In this document: positions 14,844 to 64,000 of the stretch, one piece after another | Layout of the letters: each line of letters opens with the position of its first letter | Position numbering within the stretch: position 1 is the stretch's first letter | IMG/VR virus record: IMGVR_UViG_3300044972_002389 | Location: 264,604 to 328,603 of that record | Length of the DNA stretch: 64,000 nt | Strand: one strand, 5' to 3' | Position numbers and translations under genes: made by a program | Notes under the pieces: generated by a model | Told to the model about the DNA's origin: nothing | Databases searched by the model: none | Seen by the model: the letters and a program-made list of their open reading frames with translations, nothing else

Positions 14844-14868
14844 ACTCACAGTCCCTTGTTTGCCCAGC

Positions 14869-14896
14869 AATGTAGCTGAATTTGCGACGCTGTCAA
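14869..14896 (-). promoter_or_regulatory. host sigma70-type early promoter (alphaproteobacterial type)
   Basis: TTGACA-N14-GCTACATT on the minus strand; similar elements near 15358-15385(-), 15642-15670(+) and 15963-15990(+). Confidence 0.55.
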
Positions 14897-14902
14897 TCCA
14901 GT

Positions 14903-15037
14903 TTAGGTCCGTGCCAGCTGAGCTTCCTGGGCAGCCTCCCGTTCAACCTGCCGAAGCAGAGAGTCGGAAACAGCTCCGCCCCCAGAGAGGATCACCAGGA
15001 GCCGGTGCAGACGCTGAGCAGAAGATTCGTGAGCCAT
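14903..15037 (-). CDS. small hypothetical protein (44 aa)
   Basis: Not in the ORF track. MAHESSAQRLHRLLVILSGGGAVSDSLLRQVEREAAQEAQLART; SD GAAAGGA. Confidence 0.5.
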   Translation of the reverse strand: MAHESSAQRLHRLLVILSGGGAVSDSLLRQVEREAAQEAQLART

Positions 15038-15063
15038 TTTGTAGGTCCTTTCAGTTTAGTGTG

Positions 15064-15336
15064 TCAAGTGTTGAGCACGTGAACAGTAACGCCAGCCAGC
15101 TGAGGCATATGCTGGAGGGTGTTAGGGCTGGGTGCCATCACCCAAGCAGTCACCTCTCCATAGTGCATAACTCGGCGCTGGATTGTGAACTCTGCCTCAC
15201 TCCCAGTGCGATGGCTCACCAAACGCAAGCCATCATACCAGAAGCTGTGGCCCCCGCGATCCACCTGACTGGCCTCCACCACAAACCTACGCAGTTGGCG
15301 GCAGTAAGTCATGTCCTTGGTGTTTACAAGCATCAC
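15064..15336 (-). CDS. hypothetical protein
   Basis: 90-aa ORF with GGAG SD and upstream promoter. Confidence 0.6.
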   Translation of the reverse strand: MMLVNTKDMTYCRQLRRFVVEASQVDRGGHSFWYDGLRLVSHRTGSEAEFTIQRRVMHYGEVTAWVMAPSPNTLQHMPQLAGVTVHVLNT

Positions 15337-15381
15337 TGTTCTCCGTGCAACAACTGCAATTTAGCAGATTTTTTGACGAGG

Positions 15382-15549
15382 TCAAGCCTTTGGTGGAAAA
15401 ACCTTATCAAAAACCAAACCAGCAACCATACCACAGGATGCTCCCACCACAAAGCTCCAGAAAAAACTCAACTCAAACATTACCGACACAGCCACCGCTC
15501 CAACTGCTGCCAGGACTGCTGCCACTAGGTATGCAACTGCGTAAAACAT
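15382..15549 (-). CDS. small two-TM membrane protein (55 aa)
   Basis: Not in the ORF track. MFYAVAYLVAAVLAAVGAVAVSVMFELSFFWSFVVGASCGMVAGLVFDKVFPPKA; SD GAGAGGG. Confidence 0.55.
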   Translation of the reverse strand: MFYAVAYLVAAVLAAVGAVAVSVMFELSFFWSFVVGASCGMVAGLVFDKVFPPKA

Positions 15550-15697
15550 CTGTTACCCTCTCTTGCACATTTATGCCCCAGCATAAGACTCCAATGACAT
15601 CTGTCAAGCCCAAAATTCTCCAAATAAGACGGTTTTTTCCATAGACAAGCCAGCATCACACAGCTATATTGCGTGGGCAAACAAGGAGCATACGCAA

Positions 15698-15934
15698 ATG
15701 GACAAGCTTACTACAGCACTGCGGAACAATGTAGTTGTTGTGACCTTCAAGAAGGTTGATGGAACGGTGCGTAAGATGCGTGCCACAACGGACGCGAGCC
15801 GCTTCATCTACGAAAGCAAAGCCACTGGTGAGCGCAAGCGCAATGACGGTGTTACTGTGCTGTGGGATATGGACAAGGGCCAGTGGCGTAGCATGCGGAA
15901 CGACAGCTTGATTGAGTGGCAAGTGGAAGCTTAA
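15698..15934 (+). CDS. SH3/WYL_2-like small phage protein
   Basis: V.VTFKKVDG.VR.M.AT...WDMDK..WRS motif; SD AAGGAG. Confidence 0.7.
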   Translation: MDKLTTALRNNVVVVTFKKVDGTVRKMRATTDASRFIYESKATGERKRNDGVTVLWDMDKGQWRSMRNDSLIEWQVEA

Positions 15935-16015
15935 CTTTTTGAGGCAATGCAAGGAAAACCTCTTGCATTGCCTTTTCTCCCTGCTATACTGCTGAGGCAA
16001 ACAAGGAGCCTACCA

Positions 16016-17059
16016 ATGGAACTGGAAAACGCTTTTGTGCGTGTGATCAAAGGAAACACACGGCAGGGAGTGAGCGTTGACGGAACTGTGTTCCGTCTGC
16101 TGGGCCATCTCAATACTGATCAGTGGGGCACCTATATCACTGTAGATGGTCGTGGGCATGAAGGTACCCGGAATGGTAAAGCCCGGATTTATGTCAGCGC
16201 AACCGGCTATCAGATGATTGATGCCCAAGGTGCAGTGCAAGCTGACCCTGATATTATGAGCTTTGAGGAAACTGACTCCCGAACCGATGCAGAGATTGGT
16301 GCGGATCTCAAAGAGACTTTTGAGATTGTGGCTGAGATGACAGAGGCCACCACAACGGGTGTGATCAAGGGTTTGATCATCTCGGGGCCTGCTGGTATTG
16401 GCAAAAGCCACACTGTTGAGACGGTGCTGGACGAAACTGTTGGGATGCAATGCAAGCTTCAGGGCTTGGAGCCCAAGTATGAAATCATAAAAGGCAATCT
16501 CAGTGCCATTATTCTGTATTGCACCTTGTATCGCTACAGCAGCAAGGGCTCGGTGCTGGTGCTGGATGACTGCGATGGGCTGCTGTATGATGAAGATGGC
16601 TTGAACGTGCTGAAAGCAGTTTTGGACACCAAGAAGACCCGGCGGGTGCATTGGGGCACCAGCAGTACTGTCCTTGAAAAGGAAGGAGTGCCCACCAGCT
16701 TTGAGTTTGAAGGTTCAGTTGTGTTCCTCACCAACATCAAGTGGGACAATCCCAAGAGCCCTCGCATTGCCAACCATCTCAATGCAATAATGAGTCGAGT
16801 TCACTATTTGGACCTCAAGGTCGACACACTGCGTGAGCGTGTTATTCACATGCGTAATGTAGTTGACACAACGGACATGCTGTGGGAATACAATTTCAAC
16901 AAGAGGGATGTGGATGATCTCATGGGGTGGGTGATGGAAAACATCAACCGGATTCAGTTTGTAGACCTCAGGACCGTGCTGAAGGCAGCAGACCTAAAGC
17001 GTGCGATGCCCACGACGTGGCGCAAGCGTGCTGATCGAACACTGTGCAAGAGGGGTTGA
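16016..17059 (+). CDS. AAA-family ATPase
   Basis: GPAGIGKS Walker A, LVLDDCD Walker B; SD AAGGAG. Confidence 0.8.
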   Translation: MELENAFVRVIKGNTRQGVSVDGTVFRLLGHLNTDQWGTYITVDGRGHEGTRNGKARIYVSATGYQMIDAQGAVQADPDIMSFEETDSRTDAEIGADLKETFEIVAEMTEATTTGVIKGLIISGPAGIGKSHTVETVLDETVGMQCKLQGLEPKYEIIKGNLSAIILYCTLYRYSSKGSVLVLDDCDGLLYDEDGLNVLKAVLDTKKTRRVHWGTSSTVLEKEGVPTSFEFEGSVVFLTNIKWDNPKSPRIANHLNAIMSRVHYLDLKVDTLRERVIHMRNVVDTTDMLWEYNFNKRDVDDLMGWVMENINRIQFVDLRTVLKAADLKRAMPTTWRKRADRTLCKRG

Positions 17060-17061
17060 AT

Positions 17062-17337
17062 ATGCGAGTCACATGTTTTGTGCCTGTCCAGGAAGATTGG
17101 TATGGTAACTTCCAGATTGCGGATGACAGGCGGCACGATCTTACGCTACTCGTGCAGGTGAGTGCCATGAGTCTCAGCAATGGGCAATACCGGGTGTGCG
17201 TTTGGGGCAATGATGATTTTGGCTTTGAACGGGACTTTGAGCAGCCAGGCGAGGCCATGGTGCTGTATCAGCTGATTGTGAGCCAGCCCTATCCCACCCA
17301 AACTTGGCTCAAGAACCTTGATATGGTTCGGGCTTGA
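17062..17337 (+). CDS. hypothetical protein
   Basis: Tightly packed ORF in the early cluster. Confidence 0.55.
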   Translation: MRVTCFVPVQEDWYGNFQIADDRRHDLTLLVQVSAMSLSNGQYRVCVWGNDDFGFERDFEQPGEAMVLYQLIVSQPYPTQTWLKNLDMVRA

Positions 17338-17360
17338 TAGATACAGAAAGGAAAAATGGC

Positions 17361-17534
17361 ATGAAGCGAGTGCTGGTGACTGTGGAGTTCACACTCCGCG
17401 ATGACGACAGGCTGCATGAGATGAGCGAGGAGGCCCTGGCCACCGAAGTGCGCCATCTCTTTGAGCAAGAACAAGGGGGCGTTGCCATGTATGGCTTCAC
17501 GGGCGTGATGGCACTGATGGCCAAGGAGATTTAG
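17361..17534 (+). CDS. hypothetical protein
   Basis: Tightly packed ORF with purine-rich SD. Confidence 0.45.
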   Translation: MKRVLVTVEFTLRDDDRLHEMSEEALATEVRHLFEQEQGGVAMYGFTGVMALMAKEI

Positions 17535-17535
17535 C

Positions 17536-17730
17536 ATGACTACGGGCGAGAAATCAACAAAAACACTCCAACCCCACAACAAGGTAGTGAAGTCTCTTTT
17601 AAACCTTCGAGACGAACTGTATCTGAGATCGAATGATGCATCGTCTGACGAGATCTTTTTCAAGATCAACTCCTGCCTGTATAAAGAGTATCCCCATATC
17701 GGGGACACAGATGTAGCACAGGAGGAATAG
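17536..17730 (+). CDS. hypothetical protein
   Basis: SD AAGGAG, tightly packed. Confidence 0.5.
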   Translation: MTTGEKSTKTLQPHNKVVKSLLNLRDELYLRSNDASSDEIFFKINSCLYKEYPHIGDTDVAQEE

Positions 17731-17731
17731 C

Positions 17732-18010
17732 ATGACACTGGACCAAGTTATCCGCAACCTTGAGAACACCATCCTGGGCAAGCGCGGCTTGCTATTTGAC
17801 AGCATCAACTTTTACACAGGCGGAGATGGGGTGGCTGAGCGAGTCACGTCAGAGTTCCTCCGAGTGAACATCAGCGAGCTGGAGCGCATCCTAGCTGACC
17901 TCAAAAAAGTGCAAGAGGCAGCTACAGCAGCCAGCTGGGAACGCAACCCAGACCGTATGGGAGGTTGCTACACCCAAGAAGAGATTGACGCAAGCCAACG
18001 TTACCGCTAA
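17732..18010 (+). CDS. hypothetical protein
   Basis: SD GGAGG. Confidence 0.55.
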   Translation: MTLDQVIRNLENTILGKRGLLFDSINFYTGGDGVAERVTSEFLRVNISELERILADLKKVQEAATAASWERNPDRMGGCYTQEEIDASQRYR

Positions 18011-18034
18011 AGTGCGCAAACAAGGAGAATATTC

Positions 18035-18427
18035 ATGACACCTACCGATCAAGCTGCGCTGACTTATCTCGCAGAGTTCCTCAAGCGCAATCCGCAAATC
18101 CTGAAAACAGCTTACGGTAAGCATGCTGAGGGCAATGAAATGCAGGAGTTTCAAAGCTATTGTGAAAATTCCAGCAACTGGCAAATGTTGGGGCCGCGCC
18201 CGCCTAACGAGGATGACTATTTCAAGGGCACCAGTATTGGAGTGTATCTTGAGGGTTCCACCCCAAATGAATACGTTGAACCAACCAACACTGTGCCAGC
18301 CGTCAAGGTCTCACAGATGCGCTATTTTGCGGTGCTGGATGAGATGAGTGACTGTGGCTTCAACCTACTGGAAATGAAAGACGGCAGTTTCCGAGTGGGC
18401 CAGCTTGCTGACAATTGGCCGGAATAA
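18035..18427 (+). CDS. hypothetical protein
   Basis: SD AAGGAG. Confidence 0.55.
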   Translation: MTPTDQAALTYLAEFLKRNPQILKTAYGKHAEGNEMQEFQSYCENSSNWQMLGPRPPNEDDYFKGTSIGVYLEGSTPNEYVEPTNTVPAVKVSQMRYFAVLDEMSDCGFNLLEMKDGSFRVGQLADNWPE

Positions 18428-18441
18428 GAAAGGAAATCAAG

Positions 18442-18624
18442 ATGGGTAACATTCTCGTCGTAACTCTCATGCTCACAGGAGATCCTTCTTTTGAGCCCAG
18501 GCGCCTGGACACTGTGAGCAAAGGCTGCGAGTTCGAACGGGCCACTGTGGCTGGCATGAACCGTGCCGAAGCTGAGGCTGGAACCAACCGCCGCTATATG
18601 CCCTACTGCGTGGGGAAGATGTAA
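18442..18624 (+). CDS. hypothetical protein
   Basis: SD AAGGA. Confidence 0.45.
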   Translation: MGNILVVTLMLTGDPSFEPRRLDTVSKGCEFERATVAGMNRAEAEAGTNRRYMPYCVGKM

Positions 18625-18625
18625 G

Positions 18626-19093
18626 ATGCCTACTCTATGGATGTTGGTGGGTGTGCCTGGCAGCGGGAAGTCCACATGGCTTGATCAGCAGGGCTTTGGT
18701 CGAGACACTGCTATCATCAGCACCGATCAGCACATTGATGCTGAGGCAGCTCGTCAAGGCCGAACATACAGCGAGGTGTTCAAGGGCTTTGTGAAGCGTG
18801 CTACCTCCATCATGAACGCTGATTTGGCCATTGCCATCAAGGATGGAGACGACATTTGTTGGGATCAAACCAATGTCACCAGCAAAAGCCGTGCAGCTAA
18901 GCTGGCCTCTGTGCCCAACACCTACCGGAAGGTGGCAGTGTTCTTTCCCACTCCTGAGCCCAAGGAGCTGGAACGCAGGCTCGCCAGCCGGCCAGGCAAG
19001 CATATTCCCTGGAACATCCTCCAGGGCATGGCCAGTCACTTGGAGATACCCACTGAGGACGAAGGCTTTGATGAGGTTGTGGTTGTGTCATAG
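18626..19093 (+). CDS. AAA_33-type P-loop kinase (polynucleotide kinase-like)
   Basis: MLVGVPGSGKSTW, ISTD, WDQTN...R, P...EGFD. Confidence 0.85.
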   Translation: MPTLWMLVGVPGSGKSTWLDQQGFGRDTAIISTDQHIDAEAARQGRTYSEVFKGFVKRATSIMNADLAIAIKDGDDICWDQTNVTSKSRAAKLASVPNTYRKVAVFFPTPEPKELERRLASRPGKHIPWNILQGMASHLEIPTEDEGFDEVVVVS

Positions 19094-19099
19094 CGCACT

Positions 19100-19210
19100 G
19101 AGCCGGGGAAAATTGCCCTGATAACTCCCAGGGCGGGCTCCGTATTGGGACCTTGGAAACAGGGTTAAGGAGGGGTTAATTTGCCCGTTTAGCAGGAACC
19201 TCCGGCCATA
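19100..19210. ncRNA. candidate structured intergenic RNA, class unknown
   Basis: Several GC-rich stems including a GAAA tetraloop hairpin; see findings. Confidence 0.35.
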
Positions 19211-19279
19211 AAACTATTGACACAACCACACACTACAAATACACTACTGATGATATCAATCCACTGAAAGGATATAAAC

Positions 19280-20005
19280 ATGGCTTTCTTCACTTCATTC
19301 TTCAAAAGCAAGATGGACTCACTGCACGATGGGGCAATCAAGCTGATGGCCCAATGGGACCCTGAGGCAGTTTCTTCAGCCCAGCTACGGGAGTGGGACA
19401 CTCAGGCCCAGGAGATGGCTACGGCTGCTGCACGAGCTGAAACTGACAGCAAGCAGGCTGCTGAGCGACTAGCCAACATCCAAAGTAACTTAGCTCGCTA
19501 CACGGCTGCTGCTGAAAAGCTGCTGACCGCTGGTAACGAAACTGCTGCCAACAAGGCTGCTGATGAAGCACTCTCGTATCAAGCTCAGCTGAAGGATGCT
19601 GAGGAAGAGGCTGCTGATGCCTCTGAGTGGGCTACTGAAACTCGCCAAGCTGCACAAAATGCCCAGCGACTGGTCCTCGAAGGCCGGCAGAAGCTGGACC
19701 GTGCTCGCCGAGACCAAGAGCGTGCGGAACAGGAGGCCAAGGTCTCTGAGGCACGCCGAGCAGAACGGGAACGTATGGCTGGCATCAGCAAAGGGCTGTC
19801 GGGTACAGACGCAGCACTGGATGCTATGGCAGCAAATGCTCGTGAGTCTCGCGAGCGCGCTGCTGCTAACCGTATTCGGAGTGATGCACTGGGCAAGGCC
19901 TCAGACAACGACTCTGCTGTAGCTGCTGCTCTTGCAGAAGTTGACGGCAAAGGCAAAAGCAACAGCCTGCACGAAAAGCTGGCTGCACTTCGCAGTAAGG
20001 TGTGA
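19280..20005 (+). CDS. PspA/IM30-like coiled-coil protein
   Basis: Ala/Glu-rich long coiled coil, DPE motif near the N-terminus, terminal EKLAALR helix as in PspA. Confidence 0.6.
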   Translation: MAFFTSFFKSKMDSLHDGAIKLMAQWDPEAVSSAQLREWDTQAQEMATAAARAETDSKQAAERLANIQSNLARYTAAAEKLLTAGNETAANKAADEALSYQAQLKDAEEEAADASEWATETRQAAQNAQRLVLEGRQKLDRARRDQERAEQEAKVSEARRAERERMAGISKGLSGTDAALDAMAANARESRERAAANRIRSDALGKASDNDSAVAAALAEVDGKGKSNSLHEKLAALRSKV

Positions 20006-51993: not shown

Positions 51994-52039
51994 CCTCCTG
52001 GATTTCTCCTTTAAATAATCAAAAAGGAGAACATCAAAT

Positions 52040-52876
52040 ATGGCCGGTGAGCAAGACGGGTATGTGGACTTCAATGACAGAACAACCCCTAATGAAATAG
52101 CGAGTGTGCAAATTCGAACCGAACCTCCCCCACGGACTGAGCCTGCATTTGAAAGTTTTGTAAGGCGTATTGAAAGCTATGCAAGGGAGCCAGCAGTGGT
52201 AGCTATGAATGATGCTATCCAAGCTGCACAAGCCGCCGCAGCAAACAATCCGGATGCACAGCAGGCATTACAACAGAGCTTGGGTCCCGTACAAAATGTT
52301 GGCCTAATAGGCGGGTTCGGGGCTCTGTTGGCAAGTCATAGAGACAGAATTGTGGATGACGGTACTCGAATATTTCGGGCAATAAATGACTTTTTTCAAC
52401 CAGGTAGAGCACAAGATCCCAGTAGGTGTGCTACTGTTGGTGATTACATAGGAACCATACAAGGCCGATACAACGACACATTGGGATCTATTACTAGTGC
52501 TATAGGCCAATTTGTAGGAGCTCTTGTAAGTATCCCTGCACGCATAATTGGGGCTATAACCTCTGCCATTTCTGGCTTGATTGGGGCAATTGTGGGTGGC
52601 ATTTCTGCTGTTGTACAAGCTGCTGCTGGAGTTGTAAGTAGTGCTGTGGGAGTACTCACTGGCGCCATAAGTGGGGTCAGTAGCTTGCTAGGCACCATTG
52701 GCGCTGGTATAAGCCAAGTTACAGGAGCAGTAGCTCGCGAAACACAAAATATCACAACAGCATTAACATCTGGATTTGCATCTGGATTCAGTCGCAGTGT
52801 TTCAGGAGTGAATCCCTGTGTAGCCGCAGCACAACAGGGTTCACCTGTGGCACAATTTGGCACACCACCAACCTAA
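52040..52876 (+). CDS. Gly/Ala-rich hypothetical (probable virion) protein
   Basis: Late promoter at 52012; amphipathic small-residue repeats. Confidence 0.55.
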   Translation: MAGEQDGYVDFNDRTTPNEIASVQIRTEPPPRTEPAFESFVRRIESYAREPAVVAMNDAIQAAQAAAANNPDAQQALQQSLGPVQNVGLIGGFGALLASHRDRIVDDGTRIFRAINDFFQPGRAQDPSRCATVGDYIGTIQGRYNDTLGSITSAIGQFVGALVSIPARIIGAITSAISGLIGAIVGGISAVVQAAAGVVSSAVGVLTGAISGVSSLLGTIGAGISQVTGAVARETQNITTALTSGFASGFSRSVSGVNPCVAAAQQGSPVAQFGTPPT

Positions 52877-53939: not shown

Positions 53940-53993
53940 GACCCAACAAAAACACTACATATAATCACACTACAATTTTTGAGTACAGAGAAC

Positions 53994-55871
53994 ATGAGCA
54001 ACAACGATATCAGGAAGCTAAGCGACGGAGACCATATCAGATTACGCACTGAAATGTATTTGGGCAGCAGAAGCCCGCATACACAAACTGTCATCAACTG
54101 GACTGGCAAAAAACTGGAAGCACAAGAAGTCACATGGACACCAGCCATGTATTGCGCTTTTCGCGAGATATTTGATAATGCTCTAGATGAGGTAATTGGT
54201 CACAGCTCTGGATCCCGTATTGACGTTTCTTACGATGAAACAGCAGGCAGCTTCAGTGTGAAAGATGATGGGCGTGGTATTCCCATTGACTGGGATGAAA
54301 GTGAAAACATGCACAAAGCCACTATGGTGCTGGTGTATCCACGTGCTGGACGTAATTTTGGCGAACGTGGGGAAGTCCGAGGCACAAATGGTATTGGCAG
54401 CTCGGCTACAATCCATTGCTGTGAAACCAGTACAGTAACCGTGTATCGGGACGGCAGCAAGTTTACACAAACATTTTCCGAACCCAATGCTGTGTTCAAA
54501 GACTTACAAGTAAGTGATCCCAAAATCATCAAAAGCGCAGCCAAGTCTGGCACAGAGTTGACTTTCACTCTCAGCAAGGGTGTGTTCAAACATCGCATCC
54601 TGCCCACAAGTTTTGTTCAATCTCGAGTGTATGAGGTGGCAGCCAATCATCCCACTGTTAAATTCACATTCAATGGTGAAAAAGTGGTTGTCAAAAACAC
54701 TGTGGAGAAAACATTTTTCTCAGATTCCAACTTCATCAAAATCACCTCGGAAGCAGACAATTTTCTCAGCACATTTTTCCTTGTGCCAAATTTTCAAACT
54801 GAGGGTGAGTTTGTTCACAGCACAGTAAATGATATTCCTGCGTTCAACGGTGGGCACCACATAGATGTGTTCAAACGTGTATTTTTCTCCAATCTTCTCA
54901 AAAGCTTAGAGAAAGAAAGTCGTAGGCGGGCACTCACACCCAACAGAAGCGACATTCAAGAAGGCATCCTGGTCTACAATATTACGCAGATGCACGCTCC
55001 TAACTTTGATAGCCAAAACAAAACAAGACTAATCAATGAGGACGTGGAGTCATACATTCGCACAGCCTTGGATGACGACAAGCTGTACAAGAGGATTCAA
55101 AAGGATCACAAAGAATGGATTGATCAAATCTATGCCCGTTGTGCAGCTCGTACTCAGAAAAAAGATGATGCTGAAACAGCCAAGCTGGCACGAAAAGTGC
55201 TGCGCACCAAAGTGCCCAAGCTAATGGATGCCACAGGAAAAGATCGAACCAAATGCATCTTGTTGATTACAGAAGGTGATTCAGCAGTTAGCAGTGTGGC
55301 AGCGGTGCGTGATCCAGATGTGCATGGTGGCCTGCCTTTGCGGGGCAAGATCCTAAATGTGAGAGGTGAGAGCAACAAAACAGTGTTGGACAACAGTGTG
55401 CTACAAGACATCATGAGCAGCATTGGGCTAACACTGGGACAAAAATGTGTTCGTGACAACTTGAGGTATGGGCAAGTGTGGATCACTTGTGACAGTGACA
55501 CAGATGGCGCCAACATTATGGCTCTTTTGGTTAACTTCTTTTATCTGCACTGGTCAGAATTGTTTGATCCTCAGCAACAACCATTTTTCCTTGTGTTCTC
55601 AACACCATTTATTATTCAAGAGGACAAGAAAAAGAACCGACACTACTGGTACAGTGACGACCACACCAATTACAATGGACGTGACTGGGAAGGTTGTCCC
55701 AAGCCCACTAGGGCAAAGGGCCTGGGCAGTTTGGAAGAAGTTGACTGGCGCAACAGTTTGTTGAAGCCCAGGCTTGTGCCTTTGACTGATGATGGCAAAC
55801 TTGATGGGACTCTTGACCTCTTGTTCAATCACACAAAAGCTGATCTCAGAAAACAATGGATGGAAATTTAA
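53994..55871 (+). CDS. type II topoisomerase ATPase/TOPRIM subunit (GyrB/gp39+60-like)
   Basis: EIFDNALDE, DDGRGIP, G.NGIG, TEGDSA, PLRGK, D.DTDG, KGLGS. Confidence 0.93.
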   Translation: MSNNDIRKLSDGDHIRLRTEMYLGSRSPHTQTVINWTGKKLEAQEVTWTPAMYCAFREIFDNALDEVIGHSSGSRIDVSYDETAGSFSVKDDGRGIPIDWDESENMHKATMVLVYPRAGRNFGERGEVRGTNGIGSSATIHCCETSTVTVYRDGSKFTQTFSEPNAVFKDLQVSDPKIIKSAAKSGTELTFTLSKGVFKHRILPTSFVQSRVYEVAANHPTVKFTFNGEKVVVKNTVEKTFFSDSNFIKITSEADNFLSTFFLVPNFQTEGEFVHSTVNDIPAFNGGHHIDVFKRVFFSNLLKSLEKESRRRALTPNRSDIQEGILVYNITQMHAPNFDSQNKTRLINEDVESYIRTALDDDKLYKRIQKDHKEWIDQIYARCAARTQKKDDAETAKLARKVLRTKVPKLMDATGKDRTKCILLITEGDSAVSSVAAVRDPDVHGGLPLRGKILNVRGESNKTVLDNSVLQDIMSSIGLTLGQKCVRDNLRYGQVWITCDSDTDGANIMALLVNFFYLHWSELFDPQQQPFFLVFSTPFIIQEDKKKNRHYWYSDDHTNYNGRDWEGCPKPTRAKGLGSLEEVDWRNSLLKPRLVPLTDDGKLDGTLDLLFNHTKADLRKQWMEI

Positions 55872-55872
55872 C

Positions 55873-57288
55873 ATGAAGAAGTCTCGAGCAGGAACATCAA
55901 CTACCCCTGTGACACCAGACATTGTGGACATTGGCGGGCAAACAAGCGCCTTCATCAACACAAGCTCCAAAGAATATGCCATCTACACTGCCCAAAACCG
56001 GGCTATTCCCAGCATTTGTGATGGTTTGAAGGATGGACAACGTAAGATGCTGTGGTTGATGAGAAGCAAAAGTGAGAAGGTCAAGACCATCAGCCTTGCC
56101 GGTTCTGCGATTCAAGAAGGGCTGTTTCTTCACGGAGACGTTAGTGCTGCTGAAACCATCAGTAGACTGGCAGCACCGTATCTGAACAATGTTCCATTGT
56201 TTGATGGCATTGGTGCATTTGGCACCCGAGTTGGTCCAGACAGTTGGGGTGCACCTCGATACACTTATGTAAAACGTGGTCGGGCTGCTGACGCATTGCT
56301 CTACACTGACCTTGACATTGTGCCATTGAAGCCCAATTATGATGGCAGCACTCTGGAACCAGTGAACTTTCTGCCACTTGTGCCATTGGTGCTGCTAAAT
56401 GGTGTGAGCGGTATTGCTGTGGGCTGGAGTACAGAGATCTTGCCCCACAGCTTGGAAAACCTAGTGGCTGCAACTGTGGCTGCTATTGACAAAAAACCAT
56501 TGCCCGCACTACTGCCCAGCTTTGATTATCTCAATGTAGGTGTCAATTCTCTTGGCAATAACAGCTATGAGTTCACCGGAAAGGTCAAGATTGAAGGCAG
56601 CACAGTGGTACGGGTAACTGAGTTGCCGCCTGATCTCAGCCTTGAAAAGTTCAAAGCTCGACTAAATCAAATGGAAGATGACGGCAGCATCACCACCTAC
56701 ATTGACCGCAGTACCAAAACAATTGACGTAGAAATCAGATTCAAAAGAGGTTCGATTGAAGGCTGGGATGAAGACAAATTCATTGGATTTTTGAAACTCA
56801 AAAGCAAGACAACACAGCGATTGGTTGTTCTAGACTTCAACGGCGCCAGCATCCGCCAATATCCCAATCCTGAGTCGCTAGTGCAAGCATTTGTGGAGTG
56901 GAGACTAAGTTGGTATGCCAAGCGTTATGAAAAACAAATTGCTGATCTCACACGAGAACTGAACTTTGCCAAAGCTATCAAACTCTGTGTTGAGGGTGGC
57001 TTGCCCAAATTCTTGCCCTTGGCCCAAAATCGTGCTGAAGTGCAAGCTAGAGTTGAAAAACTGGTCAAAGGCGTTTGCCTAGACGAAGACCAACTGGATC
57101 GAATTGTAGGCCTTCCCAGCTATCGATGGTCCAAGGACAGTGTTGAGAAGATTATTGAAGACATTGCACGCTTGACCCTTGAAATTGATGCACTGCAACA
57201 GTTGCTCAAAGATCCCAAAAAGATTCGCGACAATTACAAAAAAGAGACTCAAGCTCTTTTGAAATCTTTGCCTCGCAACAAATCATAA
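55873..57288 (+). CDS. type II topoisomerase breakage-reunion subunit (GyrA/gp52-like)
   Basis: RAIP...DGLK.GQRK, HGD, APRY catalytic Tyr, NG.SGIAVGWST. Confidence 0.93.
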   Translation: MKKSRAGTSTTPVTPDIVDIGGQTSAFINTSSKEYAIYTAQNRAIPSICDGLKDGQRKMLWLMRSKSEKVKTISLAGSAIQEGLFLHGDVSAAETISRLAAPYLNNVPLFDGIGAFGTRVGPDSWGAPRYTYVKRGRAADALLYTDLDIVPLKPNYDGSTLEPVNFLPLVPLVLLNGVSGIAVGWSTEILPHSLENLVAATVAAIDKKPLPALLPSFDYLNVGVNSLGNNSYEFTGKVKIEGSTVVRVTELPPDLSLEKFKARLNQMEDDGSITTYIDRSTKTIDVEIRFKRGSIEGWDEDKFIGFLKLKSKTTQRLVVLDFNGASIRQYPNPESLVQAFVEWRLSWYAKRYEKQIADLTRELNFAKAIKLCVEGGLPKFLPLAQNRAEVQARVEKLVKGVCLDEDQLDRIVGLPSYRWSKDSVEKIIEDIARLTLEIDALQQLLKDPKKIRDNYKKETQALLKSLPRNKS

Positions 57289-57334
57289 ACAGTGTACTAC
57301 AATAAATACCTTTGAAATTCACGAGGAAATCCTT

Positions 57335-57595
57335 ATGCAAGCCAACGAATTTGCCAAAAAGCCACAAAAACCTCAAAAAAAGACCACGCAATCCGTTGTT
57401 GCCAGTCCACCATCATTGGTTGAGAAAAAGTTAAAATTCAAAATCCCTCACCAAATGCGAGAGGTAACACACAATACCTCTCAACCTATGACAGGCGTGT
57501 TGCCTCCTGGTCACTCAGTGAAGCCAGGTAGTGAATTGGAACTGATTAGAGACACTGATCCAGACTTGTGGGCTCGTATATTGAGATGGGATTGA
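57335..57595 (+). CDS. hypothetical protein, first gene of a late operon
   Basis: TAAATA at 57303, SD GAGG. Confidence 0.55.
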   Translation: MQANEFAKKPQKPQKKTTQSVVASPPSLVEKKLKFKIPHQMREVTHNTSQPMTGVLPPGHSVKPGSELELIRDTDPDLWARILRWD

Positions 57596-57597
57596 AA

Positions 57598-60351
57598 ATG
57601 AAAACAAAAATTAGTAAAATTTTACAAAAAGCACTAGTTGAAGCCATAGCCCCAAGGGGTGGGCCCAAGAGCGCTCCTCCCGCCAAGCTAACAGTTAGTA
57701 GTGCCACCTTGGATTCAAGACTGGAGATGATTAACAATGTATTGGACAACATGTATGACCACATTAGTGGTATCCTGCTTGTTGGTCCTACAGGCATTGG
57801 AAAAACATCATTTGTTTATCAATTTAGTGAACTTATGGGCATGAATGCAGTAGTTGTGGAGGCACCGCATGTTAGTGAAGAGCACTTGGTTAACATTCCA
57901 TTTATGGTATATAATCCCATTAACAAAACCAAAAAAGCAGGCACTGACCAACTGACCCCAGTAGAGCCAGCAAGAAAAGCTGCTAAAAGTCCGAACCAAC
58001 CTATAGATATCAAAAAATGGGACGTAGTTTACGGTAAAAGCCATCTTGTAGCTTCCATTGAAGCGTTGAGGCCCGTAAGTGATCAAGAGCTCTTGAACCA
58101 CATGAACTCAAAATCTAGCAATAATACCAAAGCTCTTTGGAAAGGCTTAGGTGGCACCGAAACAACTATACCACCTAGAGTGGCTGAATTGCGTAGACGC
58201 TACAGCAGCATCCTATTCATTGATGAATTTATGCGTCAAGTAACAGGTGGGGTTCGTAATATTCTTCGTGATTTGGTTGTGGACAAGAAGGTTGGTGATA
58301 ATGACTTACCTCCCAACGTGTACTCTATGTATGCCAGCAACTTGAAGGATACTGGATCCCAGGGCACTGTTGAACAAATGCCCAGCTTTTACCAATTCCA
58401 ACAGATTCACTTCCCTACTCCCAGCAAGCAAGATTTTTTCCATTATTTGATTGCTGAATTTGAAAAAGATGGAGTTCATCTCAAGCCAGAAGTGGCAACA
58501 GCATTCTACAAAGCACTAGATGACAAACATATAAGTTATGATGATGCAGCATCAGAAATTCGCACCAGTCCTCGCCGGTGGGAGCAAATTATCAGTTATG
58601 TGAATGCAAGTGTTCCTGTCACTACAAAAGAACAAGCATCCTCTCTATTAGCAAACATAAAAGCTAATTTTGAAGATATTGATAAAGTAAGCAGTCTCTA
58701 TAAACTAGTTGATCAAATTGTACGTAATATTATTTGGGACACAAGTGGCGAGGACTTTGCAGGTGTGAAGGCAAATAGCCCTACCTTATGGCGTGATACA
58801 CTTATGCATCAAGTTGAAACAGCTGAAAAAATGGGCGATCAGAGAGCTTATGTTCCCATTGTTGCAGGTCAGCCTGGTATTGGCAAAACTGCGGAAATGA
58901 CTTCAATAGCTGACAAATTGAACTTAAGGCTTATAAGAATTTCTTGCACAAGTTTACGTCCTGAAGACGTTACTGGTATTCCATTGCCTGATGAAAAAGA
59001 GGGTAAATTTGATGTTAAGTTTGCTGATCCTCCGTTGTATCGAAAGATTATTGATCAAATGGAACAAAAAAAGGAAGCTTTTCTCAATTCACCAAAAATT
59101 TCAGAGGAGAGAAAACAAGAGTGGCTCGGCAAGCCCAAGCAATATTTGTTGTTCTTTGATGAATTCAACCGTCCTGAAGAAGCCACTACTTACAACACAC
59201 TGCGCCGTGTTATTTTGGACAAAAGTTTTACGGATGATATCAAGTTGCCCAAAAATCTAATTGTCGTTGCAGCCATGAATCCAACAGACCTTAAAGTCCA
59301 GCCACTCACAGGTCATATGAAAGATGCGACTGACTATATAGCAACAGCCCCACGTTGGAGCTCACAGAAAGAATTTCATGATACCTCTTTGCTGCGACCA
59401 GACCTAAGTGAGGAAGCATCCACTATTGCCCGGATGTTGGTTCATAACTTTGCTGAAAAATTTAAGCTGGATGTTCCTGACCCTAGCAAAAACATAGATT
59501 CTGAAAGCAGGCAATTCTATATTCAAGTGGGAGATGATGATGTATATATGTCAGGTAGAGAGTATTCAGACATGTTACTGGCCATGCAGCGTGGATTGGA
59601 TCGGGTAGTTAACAAAAAAGATCAGTATGTGCTGCCCAATGGTGAATTTGATAGCGACGGCTATATTGATGCCTTACTGCGCATGGCTAGCACAAAAATC
59701 ATGATGACACTAGACAATGTTTTGCACAAAAATCAAATTGACAGAGAAATGTTTGTTGACCAACTGGATCTTTGGTTGCAAGAACAACGAGAACTATTGA
59801 CCAGCAGTCAAACAACCGGAACCAGTTTGGAAAGCTTGTTTGACAATGCAGTTCGCAATCCCAAGAAGCATCTCAAAGACAATGCAGCATTTATGAATTG
59901 GGTTGATACACAATTTAGCCCAGCTGACTTCACCAATGAGTTCCTAGCTTGGTTAACAAACGTTGCTGCACAAGAGGCCAACAAGTTTGATCTGTTGGTC
60001 AGCAAAACGCATAACAAAAAAGTCATACAAGATGGTGTAGTTCAAATAACTGATGATTTGATCGACAAAGTGAACTTCATTGTTGATGAAATTATCATGG
60101 CAATGAATGTTCACAAGCTCAGTAGCCAAATTGGACAAAGTATGGAAGCTGCATTGAGAAAGTTTTGGACCAGTGTGTTCATTGCTGATATTGAAAGAAT
60201 GGAAGAAGAGGCTAAAGATCTTGCCAAAACTGATAAGGCTGCATCAAAAGCTGCCTTGGCTGCTGTAGAGGGGTATCAAAACACGTTGATGGATTATCAA
60301 CGCAAGGTTGCAGCCAAAGTAAGAAGTTTCAGAAAACCCGCAGGAACATAA
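57598..60351 (+). CDS. tandem double-AAA+ ATPase (MoxR/AAA_5-like)
   Basis: Module 1: GPTGIGKT, ILFIDEF, SPRRWE. Module 2: GQPGIGKT, DVTGIP, FFDEFNR, VAAMNP, SGREY. Confidence 0.85.
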   Translation: MKTKISKILQKALVEAIAPRGGPKSAPPAKLTVSSATLDSRLEMINNVLDNMYDHISGILLVGPTGIGKTSFVYQFSELMGMNAVVVEAPHVSEEHLVNIPFMVYNPINKTKKAGTDQLTPVEPARKAAKSPNQPIDIKKWDVVYGKSHLVASIEALRPVSDQELLNHMNSKSSNNTKALWKGLGGTETTIPPRVAELRRRYSSILFIDEFMRQVTGGVRNILRDLVVDKKVGDNDLPPNVYSMYASNLKDTGSQGTVEQMPSFYQFQQIHFPTPSKQDFFHYLIAEFEKDGVHLKPEVATAFYKALDDKHISYDDAASEIRTSPRRWEQIISYVNASVPVTTKEQASSLLANIKANFEDIDKVSSLYKLVDQIVRNIIWDTSGEDFAGVKANSPTLWRDTLMHQVETAEKMGDQRAYVPIVAGQPGIGKTAEMTSIADKLNLRLIRISCTSLRPEDVTGIPLPDEKEGKFDVKFADPPLYRKIIDQMEQKKEAFLNSPKISEERKQEWLGKPKQYLLFFDEFNRPEEATTYNTLRRVILDKSFTDDIKLPKNLIVVAAMNPTDLKVQPLTGHMKDATDYIATAPRWSSQKEFHDTSLLRPDLSEEASTIARMLVHNFAEKFKLDVPDPSKNIDSESRQFYIQVGDDDVYMSGREYSDMLLAMQRGLDRVVNKKDQYVLPNGEFDSDGYIDALLRMASTKIMMTLDNVLHKNQIDREMFVDQLDLWLQEQRELLTSSQTTGTSLESLFDNAVRNPKKHLKDNAAFMNWVDTQFSPADFTNEFLAWLTNVAAQEANKFDLLVSKTHNKKVIQDGVVQITDDLIDKVNFIVDEIIMAMNVHKLSSQIGQSMEAALRKFWTSVFIADIERMEEEAKDLAKTDKAASKAALAAVEGYQNTLMDYQRKVAAKVRSFRKPAGT

Positions 60352-60369
60352 TCAAAGATAGGACGAACA

Positions 60370-62775
60370 ATGGCATTTTCTGTCAAGAGCAATTTAGCCA
60401 AAACACTTTTGGCGTTGGATACCAAGACCTCAGTAACCCCCAAAACAAGGGTTGCTGAGGCTTGGACTATGCGGGCACGCGAAATGGGCGAAACGCCCTT
60501 CAAAAAATCCACACTTCAAGATCGGCACATACAAGAAGTGTTGCAGCATGCCAGTATGGTTACTGGGGTCCCGCTCCCTGATATTGAGCGAGCCATGCAG
60601 AAAAAAATGGCTGAGATTGAAGAGATCAAAAAGTACAGCCCTATTCTCTATGAAACCATTGCTCATAATGCTGCTGAAAATGCTGTATTTGATTTGGTAA
60701 GCAGTGTGCGAAGTAATGTAATGGATCCGCATCCAAGTTTACTAAAATTTGATGAAATAACTTTCCTCAAACTGGCCCGAATGGTTCAGGCGGAGCACCC
60801 TATGTTTCGCCCATTGAAACAACCTGCTGATCCAATCCGTAGAGTGTGGAAAGTTACTCCAATCTTGGTACCTAGTAACCTGCGTGAATACAAAAAGTAC
60901 AATGGTGTGAACACTGCTTGTGCAACTGCTCAAGGTGACTTTGTATTCAACAAACCGTTCATGCAAAACTTGATGGATTGGGCAGTTATTGAAGGTGTTC
61001 ACCCCCAAGGCAAAAAATATCACAGCAATGGAGGTCCCATTCCTGATGCCTATGTGTATGTGGAATTTTTGATTATGCATGAGTACATGCATTTTGCCTA
61101 TGGCGATTTCAATTATAGCAAACAATTGCCGCAATTCAATCACAAAGTTCACAACTGGGCTTCAGATTTCAGGAGCAATTACGACCTCGTTAAAAACAAC
61201 TTTGCGCAATTGCCTATTGGGTTGTTCAGTGATCACATCAATAGTGATCGGCAAGGCAGCTACACTGACATGGCACAGCTGGTTCACGATGAACTCAAAA
61301 AACTGCCACCACATTTGCAGAAATTGTGGGAAAAAATAGCCAAAATTGATGAAGAACCCAACAAACCCAAAACGCCTAAAAAAACCAGCACTAAACCGCC
61401 ACCGCCTGTGATCAAGGTGCGGTATAGGGCAAGTGAGAGTGATGTTGTAAGGCTCCCAGATGGTACATATGGGCAGGTTACAAAAGTTGATCCGGATGGA
61501 AGTTTTGATACCCGTCCACTAACGCAGGACGAGGCAACACAACTGCTCAATTATCCCAAAGGCTATCGTGTGCGGGCTAATCCACAAATAACAGAAAGCA
61601 AGAGAAAAAGGATTTTGTTGGAAGGCCGTTGGAAGCCTGATGATGTGATTTGGATGAAACCCAAGCGGGACAAACCTACTCCTCCACCTCAACCTCCTGA
61701 GCCCCCATTACCACCTGAACCGGAAGATGATGAGGACGAACCAACACCGCCTCCTGTAATTGACATGGAGGGGGAAGATCCACCACCTGACGAAGATGAT
61801 GAAGGAGAAGGAAGCAGTGGTGGTGAAGAAGGTGAAGACGAGGAAGAGGACGGTAAGGAAGGCAAAGGCAAAGACGAAAAAGAGAAAGAAAAGAAAAAAG
61901 AAAAAGTCTTTGGCCCGTCTCCAGATGAAATAGCTGAAAAACTCAAGGACCAGATCAAGGATTCTAACATTACACCTCGGCCAGGGACTCCTAGTGGTAG
62001 AGACGATCCCCGGATGGGTCCTGGCCAAGCTGGCAGTCCTGGTGGCGCAGGGGCATTGCCTTTGGGTTCTGCCAAAAAGCGTGTTGAAGACATCAAGCCG
62101 CATATGAATTGGAAACAGTTGATCAAGTTGATGGTGTCCAGTAGTCAATTGGCAACAGACACATCGTACACCAAGCCCAGCAGGAGAAACATCACAGGTG
62201 CGCCCATAGCTGCCAAGTTAGGGGCTGCTGCAATCAAACCTGGTCAAGTCAAGCGACCTGTTCCCATCAACAAAGTGTTGCTTGCATTCGACACATCAGG
62301 TAGCATGTGGGGGTTTGTACCTACTGCCTTGAAAGAGGCTGAAATGCTCTTGAAGCAGTTGGGCAAAGTTGATTATCCTTTTGGTGTTATGTTCTGGGCT
62401 GGTAGTCACGAAAGCTTTGTGGTAAACCAAGGACAAGATTTTTATGCTCCTGTTGACAACTTGCGCCAACTTAATGAACCTGTAGACAAAAGCAAACAAA
62501 TCAAGGGCTGGAACAATGTTTTGAAACAGCATGGCACAGGTGGCACAATGTTTACACCTGCAATGGTAAGCGAGCTATCTGCTGCTGCCTCAGATGGTTT
62601 CAATATTTTGATATTCTCAGATACTGACCTATTGGACAATCAAAATTGGCTCAACTTCCTGAAATTGTGGAAAGCACACAAAGCCAATGTGTTTTGTGTG
62701 TTCAACGATGAACCAAGTTGGCGTAAGGCAGTGAAAAAAGTGGGACAAAATACACCACATTTTACTCATTTGTAA
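60370..62775 (+). CDS. HExxH metallopeptidase-like + VWA domain protein (DUF2201-like)
   Basis: TACAT...F..N..F, MHEYMH, N.ASD; Pro/acidic linker; MIDAS DTSGSM, GGT, FSD. Confidence 0.82.
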   Translation: MAFSVKSNLAKTLLALDTKTSVTPKTRVAEAWTMRAREMGETPFKKSTLQDRHIQEVLQHASMVTGVPLPDIERAMQKKMAEIEEIKKYSPILYETIAHNAAENAVFDLVSSVRSNVMDPHPSLLKFDEITFLKLARMVQAEHPMFRPLKQPADPIRRVWKVTPILVPSNLREYKKYNGVNTACATAQGDFVFNKPFMQNLMDWAVIEGVHPQGKKYHSNGGPIPDAYVYVEFLIMHEYMHFAYGDFNYSKQLPQFNHKVHNWASDFRSNYDLVKNNFAQLPIGLFSDHINSDRQGSYTDMAQLVHDELKKLPPHLQKLWEKIAKIDEEPNKPKTPKKTSTKPPPPVIKVRYRASESDVVRLPDGTYGQVTKVDPDGSFDTRPLTQDEATQLLNYPKGYRVRANPQITESKRKRILLEGRWKPDDVIWMKPKRDKPTPPPQPPEPPLPPEPEDDEDEPTPPPVIDMEGEDPPPDEDDEGEGSSGGEEGEDEEEDGKEGKGKDEKEKEKKKEKVFGPSPDEIAEKLKDQIKDSNITPRPGTPSGRDDPRMGPGQAGSPGGAGALPLGSAKKRVEDIKPHMNWKQLIKLMVSSSQLATDTSYTKPSRRNITGAPIAAKLGAAAIKPGQVKRPVPINKVLLAFDTSGSMWGFVPTALKEAEMLLKQLGKVDYPFGVMFWAGSHESFVVNQGQDFYAPVDNLRQLNEPVDKSKQIKGWNNVLKQHGTGGTMFTPAMVSELSAAASDGFNILIFSDTDLLDNQNWLNFLKLWKAHKANVFCVFNDEPSWRKAVKKVGQNTPHFTHL

Positions 62776-62777
62776 TC

Positions 62778-63413
62778 ATGCAGGCAGAGATTCATCCGCT
62801 AGACTGGGTTTACAAAAATTTTGATGTGCCTAGCACAACCAAAATCTCCTTGAGTCCCAGTAATGAGATAGTTGTTGACGGTGATATTGTAGCTTGGGGA
62901 GTAGGGCAATCCTTTCCCCAGCTACCTGTGCGTTTCAAAAAAGTCACAGGCGTCTGCGGCTTTGCCAGCATGGGGCTTGAATCTCTCTTAGGTGCGCCAC
63001 AAGAGTGCGGGTCCTTTTATTGCTCTGGTAACGAACTAGAGTCTCTTGAACATGGACCAACAACGATTGTAGGCGGCGAATACAATTGCTCTTATAATCG
63101 TTTGAGTGATTTAACAGGCCTGCCCACTGAAATTCCAGGCAGGCTCAGCTGCCATGGTAACTGGTTAACCTCCTTACAAGGGTTTCCTAACCACGTTGGA
63201 ACAAGTGTTGACTTAACATGGCACAATAGTTTGCCTTTGTTGAGAACTTTGGTTGCTAAGGAAGTTGGGTTCTCAAACACAGGTGACACTTTCGAGAAGG
63301 CTTACCAGGTAGCCAAGATATTGAACAAATACGCAGGACAAGGCAAACGTGCCATGTTTGATTGCCAAAAAGACTTGGAAGATGCAGGATTTGAAGGAAA
63401 TGCAAGATGGTAG
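62778..63413 (+). CDS. LRR-like repeat protein, array member 1
   Basis: L.SL.G.P....G...C..N repeats; C-terminal tail shared with the next gene. Confidence 0.8.
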   Translation: MQAEIHPLDWVYKNFDVPSTTKISLSPSNEIVVDGDIVAWGVGQSFPQLPVRFKKVTGVCGFASMGLESLLGAPQECGSFYCSGNELESLEHGPTTIVGGEYNCSYNRLSDLTGLPTEIPGRLSCHGNWLTSLQGFPNHVGTSVDLTWHNSLPLLRTLVAKEVGFSNTGDTFEKAYQVAKILNKYAGQGKRAMFDCQKDLEDAGFEGNARW

Positions 63414-63958
63414 ACAAAAATGAAATAATGGAGTTGTTTGAAAAATATTTTAAAACAGCTGATGAGATAACCATTGACGATAAGGGATTGGTCTCTTGTA
63501 CTGGAGATGTAGGTCTCCAACCAGAACTGAAGCACGAGAGGTTACCTGTGTCTTTTGATATGGTTGATGGTGATTTCTGGTGCCACAACAACCAGCTCAC
63601 AACACTTGAAGGTGCACCCACTTCAGTTGGTGGTGATTTCGGGTGCTACCACAACCAGCTCACAACACTTGAAGGTGCACCCACTTCAGTTGGTGGTGAT
63701 TTCAGGTGCTACCACAACCAGCTCACCTCACTTGAAGGCATGCCAGCCGTAGAAGGAACCTTGTGGCTCTCCTACAGCCCCACGTTGCCACTGCTTCGTT
63801 GTTTGCTCGCAAAAGAGATTCAACTGTATCCCAAAGATGGGAAGCACAAAACAGCTGAAAAAATTCTCAATCGATACGCAGGGCAAGGCAAACGAGCAAT
63901 GTTTGACTGCCAAAAAGACTTGGAAGATGCAGGCTTTGAAGGAAATGCCAGATGGTAG
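63407..63958 (+). CDS. LRR-like repeat protein, array member 2
   Basis: 21-aa repeats GDFxCxxNQLTTLEGAPTSVG; same C-terminal tail. Confidence 0.85.
   Translation: MVDKNEIMELFEKYFKTADEITIDDKGLVSCTGDVGLQPELKHERLPVSFDMVDGDFWCHNNQLTTLEGAPTSVGGDFGCYHNQLTTLEGAPTSVGGDFRCYHNQLTSLEGMPAVEGTLWLSYSPTLPLLRCLLAKEIQLYPKDGKHKTAEKILNRYAGQGKRAMFDCQKDLEDAGFEGNARW
63569..63739 (+). repeat. 63-bp near-perfect tandem repeat (about 2.7 copies) encoding LRR-like units
   Basis: Units start at 63569, 63632 and 63695. Confidence 0.9.
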
Positions 63959-64000
63959 ACAAAAAAGAAGTAATGGCTTTGTTGGAAAAATATTTCAAAA
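63952..64000 (+). CDS. LRR-like array member 3 (5' end only, truncated by the window)
   Basis: MVDKKEVMALLEKYFK, paralogous to member 2's MVDKNEIMELFEKYFK; same AGATGGTAG overlap. Confidence 0.8.
   Translation, partial: MVDKKEVMALLEKYFK

Follow-up and report, generated by a model that had tools for sequence, protein, structure and literature searches.

The window analysed here comprises the last 64 kb (64,000 nt) of IMG/VR contig 3300044972_002389 (328,603 bp), and its right end, which is also the end of the contig, is occupied by a module of genes encoding a tandem AAA+ ATPase, a protein that joins an HExxH domain to a VWA domain, and a series of leucine-rich repeat (LRR) proteins. We tentatively read this module as a late-expressed, probably particle-borne remodelling machinery of T4-related jumbo phages, in which the variable LRR proteins would be the target-binding partners. 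MoxR-VWA pairs are widespread and their clients are known in few cases only; here, the likely clients or partners of a phage MoxR-VWA pair are encoded next door, are numerous and are visibly diversifying.

Composition of the module

The module lies directly behind two T4-type topoisomerase II genes (53979-57288). It opens with an ATAAATA motif resembling a T4-late type promoter (57302-57308, plus strand), located 26 nt upstream of a small open reading frame (ORF) of 86 aa (57335-57595). This is followed, all on the plus strand, by the 917-aa tandem AAA+ ATPase (57598-60351; start codon chosen by comparison with homologues), the 801-aa HExxH/VWA protein (60370-62775), LRR1 (211 aa; 62778-63413; E=4.6e-68 against the family hidden Markov model, HMM), LRR2 (183 aa; 63407-63958), and the first 16 codons of LRR3 (MVDKKEVMALLEKYFK...; 63952-64000), which is cut by the contig end. 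The genes are spaced by gaps of 2, 18 and 2 nt and then by two 7-nt ATGGTAG overlaps. No convincing plus-strand terminator was found in the module; the two weak 5-bp stems that were detected are intragenic and the stem total equalled the expectation from shuffled sequence. A preceding inspection of the DNA alone (the original prediction) had described a promoter, a small ORF, a two-module ATPase, a peptidase-motif/VWA protein and at least three LRR genes, a gene set that our analysis confirms on the plus strand. Its description of a tightly packed unit with one promoter and no visible terminator is likewise borne out by the spacing and by the stem scan against shuffled sequence.

The ATPase is composed of an N module (∼aa 40-390; Walker A 57784-57807, Walker B 58216-58230), a C module (∼aa 400-680; Walker A 58867-58890, Walker B 59152-59172) and a C-terminal helical region (∼aa 680-917). 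Walker A reads GPTGIGKT at aa 63 in the N module and GQPGIGKT at aa 424 in the C module. Across 48 homologues (30-81 % identity), both modules retain Walker A, the DExxR of Walker B, the Asn of sensor 1 and the SPR/SGR of sensor 2 with little or no variation, in agreement with the two complete AAA modules originally predicted. The C module scored above cut-off for Pfam AAA, AAA_5 (45.1 bits; cut-off 22) and AAA_3 (36.4 bits; cut-off 27; model positions 3-66 of 131 only), while the N half, when scanned alone, was above cut-off for AAA_5 (23.9 bits; cut-off 22) and for Pfam AAA. The DExxR and P-E-D-V-T-G-I-P motifs resemble those of MoxR-type modules. Judged by sequence, the label “MoxR-like” is fair for the individual modules; however, MoxR proteins have one AAA+ module per chain (∼300-500 aa, homohexamer) and the chain described here has two.

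In the AlphaFold2 (AF2) model of the ATPase (predicted local distance difference test, pLDDT, 78.7), a lid and a beta-hairpin insert accompany each of the two alpha/beta cores, which are followed by long C-terminal helices. Foldseek searches with this model returned only multi-AAA proteins (dynein, ClpA, p97, Rix7, Rea1, ClpC and Pex1/6) at low TM-scores, including the top match, dynein. A profile of the AAA family had midasin as its best match in the PDB (4.6e-11, over ∼70 residues only), whereas single-sequence searches of the PDB gave no match. The family has at least 228 members in metagenomes, of 830-960 aa and with two complete modules throughout. Many reside on contigs of 280-462 kb, and the family therefore marks a large clade of jumbo phages, which can be considered T4-related based on their gp15-like, gp32-like, topoisomerase II and ribonucleotide reductase (RNR) neighbours. 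A cultured member belongs to Ralstonia phage RsoM2USA. When 50,697 phage records were searched using tblastn, RsoM2USA provided the only full-length match to the ATPase and the sole match to the VWA protein, and six N4-like records matched part of the second AAA module. A megablast search of the region against 50,697 phage records returned nothing.

In the HExxH/VWA protein, aa 1-330 form a zincin-like domain whose HExxH motif is HEYMH (61078-61092). A small beta domain and a linker rich in Pro and acidic residues come next, and the C-terminal part is a VWA domain that carries a metal-ion-dependent adhesion site (MIDAS; DTSGS, 62290-62304). Residues H237, E238, H241 and D246 are invariant in nine orthologues (37-82 % identity), and the MIDAS (D641, S643, S645, the Thr of GGT and the Asp residues of FSDxD) is complete and invariant in nine diverged sequences. 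These invariant residues bear out the proposed combination of an HExxH motif with a MIDAS-type VWA domain, and the HExxH domain is considered a putative metallopeptidase of the zincin-like type. The DUF2201_N model (PF13203, COG3864-like) matched only the distal part of the window protein (24.9 bits; cut-off 23.2), with orthologues reaching 34.0 and 40.3 bits; the low score of the window protein is attributed to the Pro/acid-rich linker and small beta domain, which split the region. The Pfam VWA model gave 23.7 bits for one orthologue (cut-off 23.8) and weaker scores for the others. Four relatives encode the peptidase and VWA halves in two separate genes that lie next to each other.

Orthologues of the small ORF (61-86 aa) are found directly upstream of the AAA gene in relatives, including gp87 of RsoM2USA, and share the C-terminal motif P-x-L-W/Y-x-K-I-x-N-W-D. 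Protein family searches gave no match for the small ORF.

Linkage, variability and probable virion association of the module

A profile scan of IMG/VR identified 51 loci from 40 lineages, 24 of which had at least 3 kb on both sides and are referred to as fully flanked. The peptidase/VWA gene adjoins the AAA gene in 38 of the 40 lineages. An LRR gene was present in the locus in 18 of the 24 fully flanked lineages, abutting the pair in 12, with array sizes beside the pair of 1-9; no LRR genes were found at ten control loci from other phages. LRR genes were also found beside the pair in all eight further relatives, i.e. seven obtained by exact protein look-up (33-79 % AAA identity) and RsoM2USA. 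Their position shifts between relatives: some follow the VWA gene, as in the window, and others precede the AAA gene or separate it from the peptidase gene, yet adjacency holds across 26 to 100 % AAA identity as order and side change. The complete 344-kb genome of RsoM2USA contains four clear LRR members, three of which lie directly upstream of gp87-gp86-gp85 and which have their own promoter, separate from AAA/VWA; gene order relative to the window is otherwise broken into small blocks. The expectation that AAA-VWA-LRR synteny would recur in jumbo phages with a variable number of LRR genes is thus borne out: the arrangement is found, with 1-9 LRR copies, in 18 of the 24 lineages, the other six being without an LRR gene near the pair. 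Based on gene order, this conserved synteny supports a functional link between the AAA/VWA pair and the LRR proteins. The possibility that other repeat proteins replace the LRR genes in the LRR-less lineages was rejected, as nothing comparable was found at these loci.

Other neighbours of the module vary. A T4 gp15-like tail gene adjoins the pair in some lineages. One relative (300,726-bp contig) carries Acb1 (anti-CBASS), SIR2 and GGDEF-domain genes together with another LRR gene upstream of the module, which suggests a conflict-gene neighbourhood in that phage. Downstream of their two LRR genes, the 408-kb and 460-kb relatives carry calcineurin-like phosphoesterase, DUF2828/DUF7788 and HSP70 genes.

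LRR1 and LRR2 share 54 % identity over 134 aa. The AF2 model of LRR2 (pLDDT 96.9) shows an N-cap helix, a short solenoid of 21-residue repeats and a conserved, helical C-terminal cap or tail. The leading Foldseek matches in the PDB were all LRR proteins (IpaH3, SspH1 and lamprey variable lymphocyte receptors, VLRs), with weak E-values of 0.1 or worse. Against BFVD, the three significant matches equal RsoM2USA gp89, gp61 and gp88 in size, and the rest were mostly viral LRR proteins. The genes first described as “LRR-like” are thus predicted to encode true LRR solenoids, their modelled fold being closest to IpaH, SspH and VLRs. Pfam LRR_4 scores of 13-25 bits stay under the cut-off of 27, indicating that the current model does not cover this family.

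The repeat unit, derived from 75 units in 30 proteins, is 21 residues long (P-x-x-V-G-G-x-F-x-C-x-x-N-x-L-T-x-L-x-G-x). Sequence entropy peaks at positions 2, 7, 9, 11 and 12; apart from position 2, all of these are x residues in and around the F-x-C-x-x-N strand on the concave side. Unit number also varies, resulting in proteins of 183-307 aa. The family yielded >3,700 matches, and its C-terminal 60 residues alone formed 1,855 clusters at 50 % identity. This conserved C-terminal region is always found at the extreme C-terminus, and invariant acidic residues occur in it, for example within QK-D/E-L-E-D-A-G-F. We considered whether it might be a portable docking domain that is joined to recognition modules of other kinds as well, and rejected this, as the region sits behind LRRs in 131 of 132 top representatives.

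Comparison with a closely related strain, IMGVR_UViG_3300044952_001066, localized divergence to the module. The two are 99-100 % identical in DNA from the RNR genes through the small ORF (to ∼57.5 kb), but identity falls to 69-79 % at the first AAA codons and is ∼71 % in the peptidase/VWA gene, with 48 % in the VWA linker. The VWA and LRR genes are mosaic, and short patches of 96 % (60.0-60.5 kb) and 93 % (63.0-63.5 kb) identity occur. The sharp boundary at the AAA start points to allele replacement by recombination, and the divergence block is the module itself, encompassing the AAA, VWA and LRR genes together. This pattern is typical of host-phage conflict loci. A second, smaller variable patch in the same strain pair (52001-52500, 84 % identity) falls on a gene of 278 aa (52040-52876) with TAAATA 28 nt upstream and no family match in the annotation of relatives.

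The array in the window includes at least three LRR genes, and the contig breaks inside it. Because the right end of the window coincides with the contig end at a 127-nt repeat, the full array size is not countable here. This repeat (63874-64000; the end of LRR2 and start of LRR3) is common to other contigs, in one of which the identical junction runs on into a 265-aa LRR gene; identical shared junctions suggest gene conversion among the LRR paralogues. Four contigs from other samples end in LRR gene junctions identical to this repeat, at which assemblies break.

LRR genes also occur elsewhere. Arrays of 9, 5 and 2 genes (at least 16 members), far from any AAA/VWA gene, are present on a contig of 71,398 bp that comes from the same sample as the window, and a further 9-gene array is found on contigs from other samples, including one of 309,756 bp. 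The latter is without AAA and RNR genes, and the window's contig is without the gene neighbouring that array. Members away from the pair were counted only on contigs of the window's own sample, since the 309,756-bp contig may belong to another genome. On the 71,398-bp contig, the arrays of 9 and 2 genes are located at the ends and the array of 5 is internal. The 71,398-bp contig was recovered at identical length in four samples, one of which also contains the contig of the window and another the contig of 309,756 bp.

ATAAATA is about as frequent in the window as expected by chance (8 found versus 7.2 expected). Its placement is not random: each of the eight copies is correctly oriented with respect to a gene that starts 14-63 nt downstream, and 13 of 18 plus-strand TAAATA copies are intergenic, although intergenic DNA represents only 4.65 % of the window. 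We therefore regard ATAAATA as a real promoter-like motif despite the chance-level count. All relatives examined, including RsoM2USA, keep the site 30-36 nt upstream of the small ORF. In RsoM2USA it is also found ahead of the genes for tail sheath, portal, neck and baseplate and of two further virion-protein genes, and in the promoter comparison it was absent before the topoisomerase and RNR-alpha genes. T4 late promoters carry a TATAAATA-like box at approximately -10, upstream of late (structural) genes. The AATAAATA sequence matches seven of the eight positions of the T4 late box, TATAAATA, and is conserved and enriched in intergenic DNA.

Ten bands were analysed from purified RsoM2USA virions, two of which were assigned to ORF86 (96.44 kDa) and ORF89 (28.57 kDa) (PMC8504454). 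These masses fit the 840-aa tandem AAA protein and a 253-aa LRR protein of this phage. As relatives of its proteins were found in phage particles, the module is probably particle-borne. The “late” label given to the module at the outset gains indirect support from the motif at RsoM2USA structural genes and from the AAA and LRR orthologues assigned to virion bands, and it seems a reasonable one. Furthermore, the capsid targeting sequence (CTS) of T4, MKTYQEFIAE (PMC8442874), is closely resembled by the N-termini of RsoM2USA gp89 (MKTFKQFLSE) and gp81 (MKTFKLFLSE), and the CTS-like pattern occurs in only 11 of 819 RsoM2USA ORFs. A CTS comprises about 10 N-terminal residues, ends in (L/I)-x-E and is removed by the prohead protease; sequences like it are seen in LRR proteins of the RsoM2USA clade. 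Something similar occurs at the start of the AAA proteins of the window clade, in the form of an amphipathic helix that terminates in L-x-E-A and leads into a disordered Ala/Pro-rich linker. Head packaging of module proteins may be taken as a lead from these N-termini.

Proposed function and rival explanations

In the proposed remodelling module, for which MoxR-VWA pairs and midasin serve as models, the MIDAS of the VWA domain would grip an acidic residue of a protein ligand, and the AAA ring, probably a trimer of two-module chains, would pull on or remodel this ligand using ATP, while the HExxH domain could cut the ligand so gripped. The LRR proteins, acting as adaptors or being the cargo, would be variable target-binding partners of the AAA/VWA core. 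With their hypervariable concave faces they would recognise different, fast-changing targets, of which host proteins encountered at or shortly after infection are the most plausible, and a particle-borne machine could act once cellular ATP was available. A role against fast-changing host targets is favoured because of the variability of the concave face, the expansion of paralogues and the strain-level divergence of the cassette. Contact between the AAA, VWA and LRR proteins, the adaptor role, delivery into the host and the nature of the targets are the inferred parts of this model.

Several observations weigh against this interpretation. In six of the 24 fully flanked lineages the pair has no LRR gene nearby, and most LRR genes of this phage lineage are in arrays away from any AAA/VWA gene. 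The conserved C-terminal region of the LRR proteins is partly a solenoid cap and is almost never found without LRRs, and thus need not be a docking signal. Virion association was assigned from gel bands by mass spectrometry and mass matching, with the proteins described as those to which the bands “most likely correspond” (PMC8504454), and the LRR proteins of the window clade are without the CTS-like N-terminal extension of the RsoM2USA clade. Lastly, PADLOC and NCBIfam models gave nothing above threshold, with no match to a known defence or anti-defence system.

A strong rival, which we consider possible though doubtful, is that the AAA-VWA pair is a virion-assembly chaperone that folds or installs structural proteins, with the peptidase processing them and the LRR proteins being structural clients (for example, surface adhesins or decoration proteins) that set host range. 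Such a machine would work in the infected cell during morphogenesis and would merely be carried in the particle. For group 2.2 jumbo phages, an assembly role of the MoxR-vWA-metallopeptidase pair has been put forward, with p618/p892 of Acidianus two-tailed virus as precedent (PMC7824862). The late-type promoter common to structural genes, the virion bands for the AAA protein and an LRR protein, and the T4 gp15-like tail gene beside the pair in some lineages are all consistent with this view. However, divergence of the module to ∼70 % identity between strains with 99-100 % identical flanks would be unexpected for a housekeeping factor, and the appearance of a chaperone as a 96 kDa gel band of purified virions would be unusual. 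As clients, the LRR proteins are of ∼200 aa with no recognisable fibre or attachment domain, and a CTS-like N-terminus suggests a location inside the head and not at the surface. The chaperone and the target-directed remodelling module could be combined if the LRR proteins are clients.

Accidental neighbourhood is less likely. Here, the pair would be self-contained, like gp24/gp25 of N4, and the LRR paralogues would accumulate independently in an adjoining plastic region, as could be expected from the arrays of 9, 5 and 2 genes found without AAA/VWA, the six lineages without LRR genes beside the pair, the separate promoter of the RsoM2USA LRR genes, and the existence in N4-like phages of a single-AAA and DUF2201 pair without LRR genes. 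We nevertheless consider the absence of any functional coupling unlikely, given that adjacency persists over 26 to 100 % AAA identity despite changes in order and side and that three of the four RsoM2USA LRR genes adjoin the pair. In addition, an AAA protein and an LRR protein were assigned to the same virion preparation, and the block of strain divergence spans AAA, VWA and LRR together.

A more far-reaching version of the remodelling module, which we regard as quite improbable, is a “mini-midasin” protease that is packaged in the head and injected. In this version a CTS-bearing part would load the AAA-VWA-LRR complex into the capsid, and the complex would reach the cell together with the DNA. 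A germline-encoded, VLR-like LRR repertoire, diversified through duplication and recombination and exchanged among strains in cassette form, would pick host defence or other host proteins for ATP-driven dismantling and cleavage; if true, this would represent a new class of phage counter-defence or takeover device. The least probable explanation is a two-component AAA+ protease similar to FtsH or ClpA, in which stacked rings would unfold substrates for bulk degradation by the HExxH protein with LRR proteins as degradation adaptors or substrates: the fold search also gave the stacked type II unfoldases ClpA, p97, ClpC and Pex1/6 and an invariant HExxH partner is encoded next door, but the TM-scores of the unfoldase matches are low, sequence affinity is to AAA_5, AAA_3 and midasin rather than to classical unfoldases, the DExxR and P-E-D-V-T-G-I-P motifs resemble MoxR-type modules, and DUF2201-type peptidases are not known as chambered proteases.

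Related systems and further observations

The designation “candidate new system” in the original prediction was overstated, since the MoxR-vWA-metallopeptidase pair of group 2.2 jumbo phages was already known; what stands are the additions beyond it. The pair was predicted in 2021 and a role in virion assembly was proposed (Iyer, Anantharaman, Krishnan, Burroughs and Aravind, PMC7824862). Like the module, it is found in T4-related jumbo phages and consists of a MoxR-like ATPase gene followed by a vWA protein with an N-terminal metallopeptidase domain; unlike the module, the doubled AAA, the LRR partners and the small ORF are not mentioned in that report. The group 2.2 examples (ASV44729.1/ASV44728.2) were compared with the window proteins by description only. 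Compared with the known pair, the doubled AAA with intact active-site motifs in both modules, the small partner and its conservation, the recurring linkage to LRR genes, the scale of the LRR family and the behaviour of the cassette are new.

A second phage relative is the pair of the N4 gp24/gp25 type (e.g. Stenotrophomonas phage Pokken), in which an AAA gene is directly followed by one for a DUF2201_N “putative metallopeptidase” protein. PHROG 1297 and 1314 match the AAA and HExxH/VWA proteins of the window. The N4 pair differs in having a single AAA module of ∼347 aa (32 % identity over one module), a replication-region context and no LRR genes.

Among cellular systems, midasin/Rea1, RavA-ViaA, CbbQ-CbbO and NorQ-NorD likewise employ an AAA_5-type ATPase that works via a partner-gripping MIDAS-VWA domain. 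Midasin, the best PDB profile match of the window AAA protein, also concatenates AAA modules in one chain, but has six modules rather than two, and in the window the VWA domain resides on a separate, peptidase-fused protein. Midasin and the MoxR-VWA systems are cellular maturation factors, not phage particle proteins. The bacterial MoxR-vWA-centric ternary systems, for which a role in conflict was proposed (Kaur, Burroughs, Iyer and Aravind 2020, PMC7159879), share the MoxR and vWA core, a diversifying third component and, frequently, a peptidase. They are, however, host-encoded and their third part is VMAP, iSTAND, FtsH or a beta-propeller, where the window module has LRR proteins. These third-component domains were not found in the module, nor was there a Pfam bpMoxR or VMAP signature or a PADLOC match.

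The internal proteins of T4 (IPI-III and Alt) are variable, late-expressed proteins that are packaged in the head and injected, and their CTS resembles the N-terminus of RsoM2USA gp89; there is, however, no homology past this N-terminal decapeptide, and the LRR proteins of the window are without the extension. The LRRs of IpaH, SspH and YopM and the lamprey VLRs resemble those of the module in their 20-21-residue units, conserved caps, variable cassette number and concave-face variability. The window LRR proteins differ in having no NEL ligase domain, and their diversity arises from gene arrays rather than somatic assembly.

If LRR proteins do steer a particle-borne remodelling protease, this would be a new phage means of handling variable hosts. 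If they do not, the data still define a large LRR family that awaits characterisation, together with a hot spot of recombination in these genomes. As a cultured phage, RsoM2USA makes the role of phage MoxR-VWA pairs and of jumbo-phage paralogue arrays testable in one genetic system.

Paralogue arrays of other kinds were also observed. Tandem arrays of ∼190-210-aa paralogues with 4-nt overlaps (gp274-284 and gp301-337) occupy 175-211 kb of RsoM2USA; these were considered as members of the LRR family and rejected, as iterated HMM searches gave only matches of 1.7e-4 or worse. In Atu_ph07, an array of ∼255-265-aa paralogues was noted at 43.3-50.6 kb and 12.8-20.1 kb, near genes of 490 and 778 aa and a 1,168-aa “putative internalin”; no LRR or AAA family member was found in the first 50 kb of this phage with the profiles used. 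The RNR large-subunit gene of one relative had a faint match to an intein-splicing domain. Finally, the window contains a GC-rich stretch at 14001-20000 (0.50-0.54 versus ∼0.42-0.45 elsewhere), which may be an acquired island and is followed by a GC-poor region at 20-24 kb (0.39-0.40).

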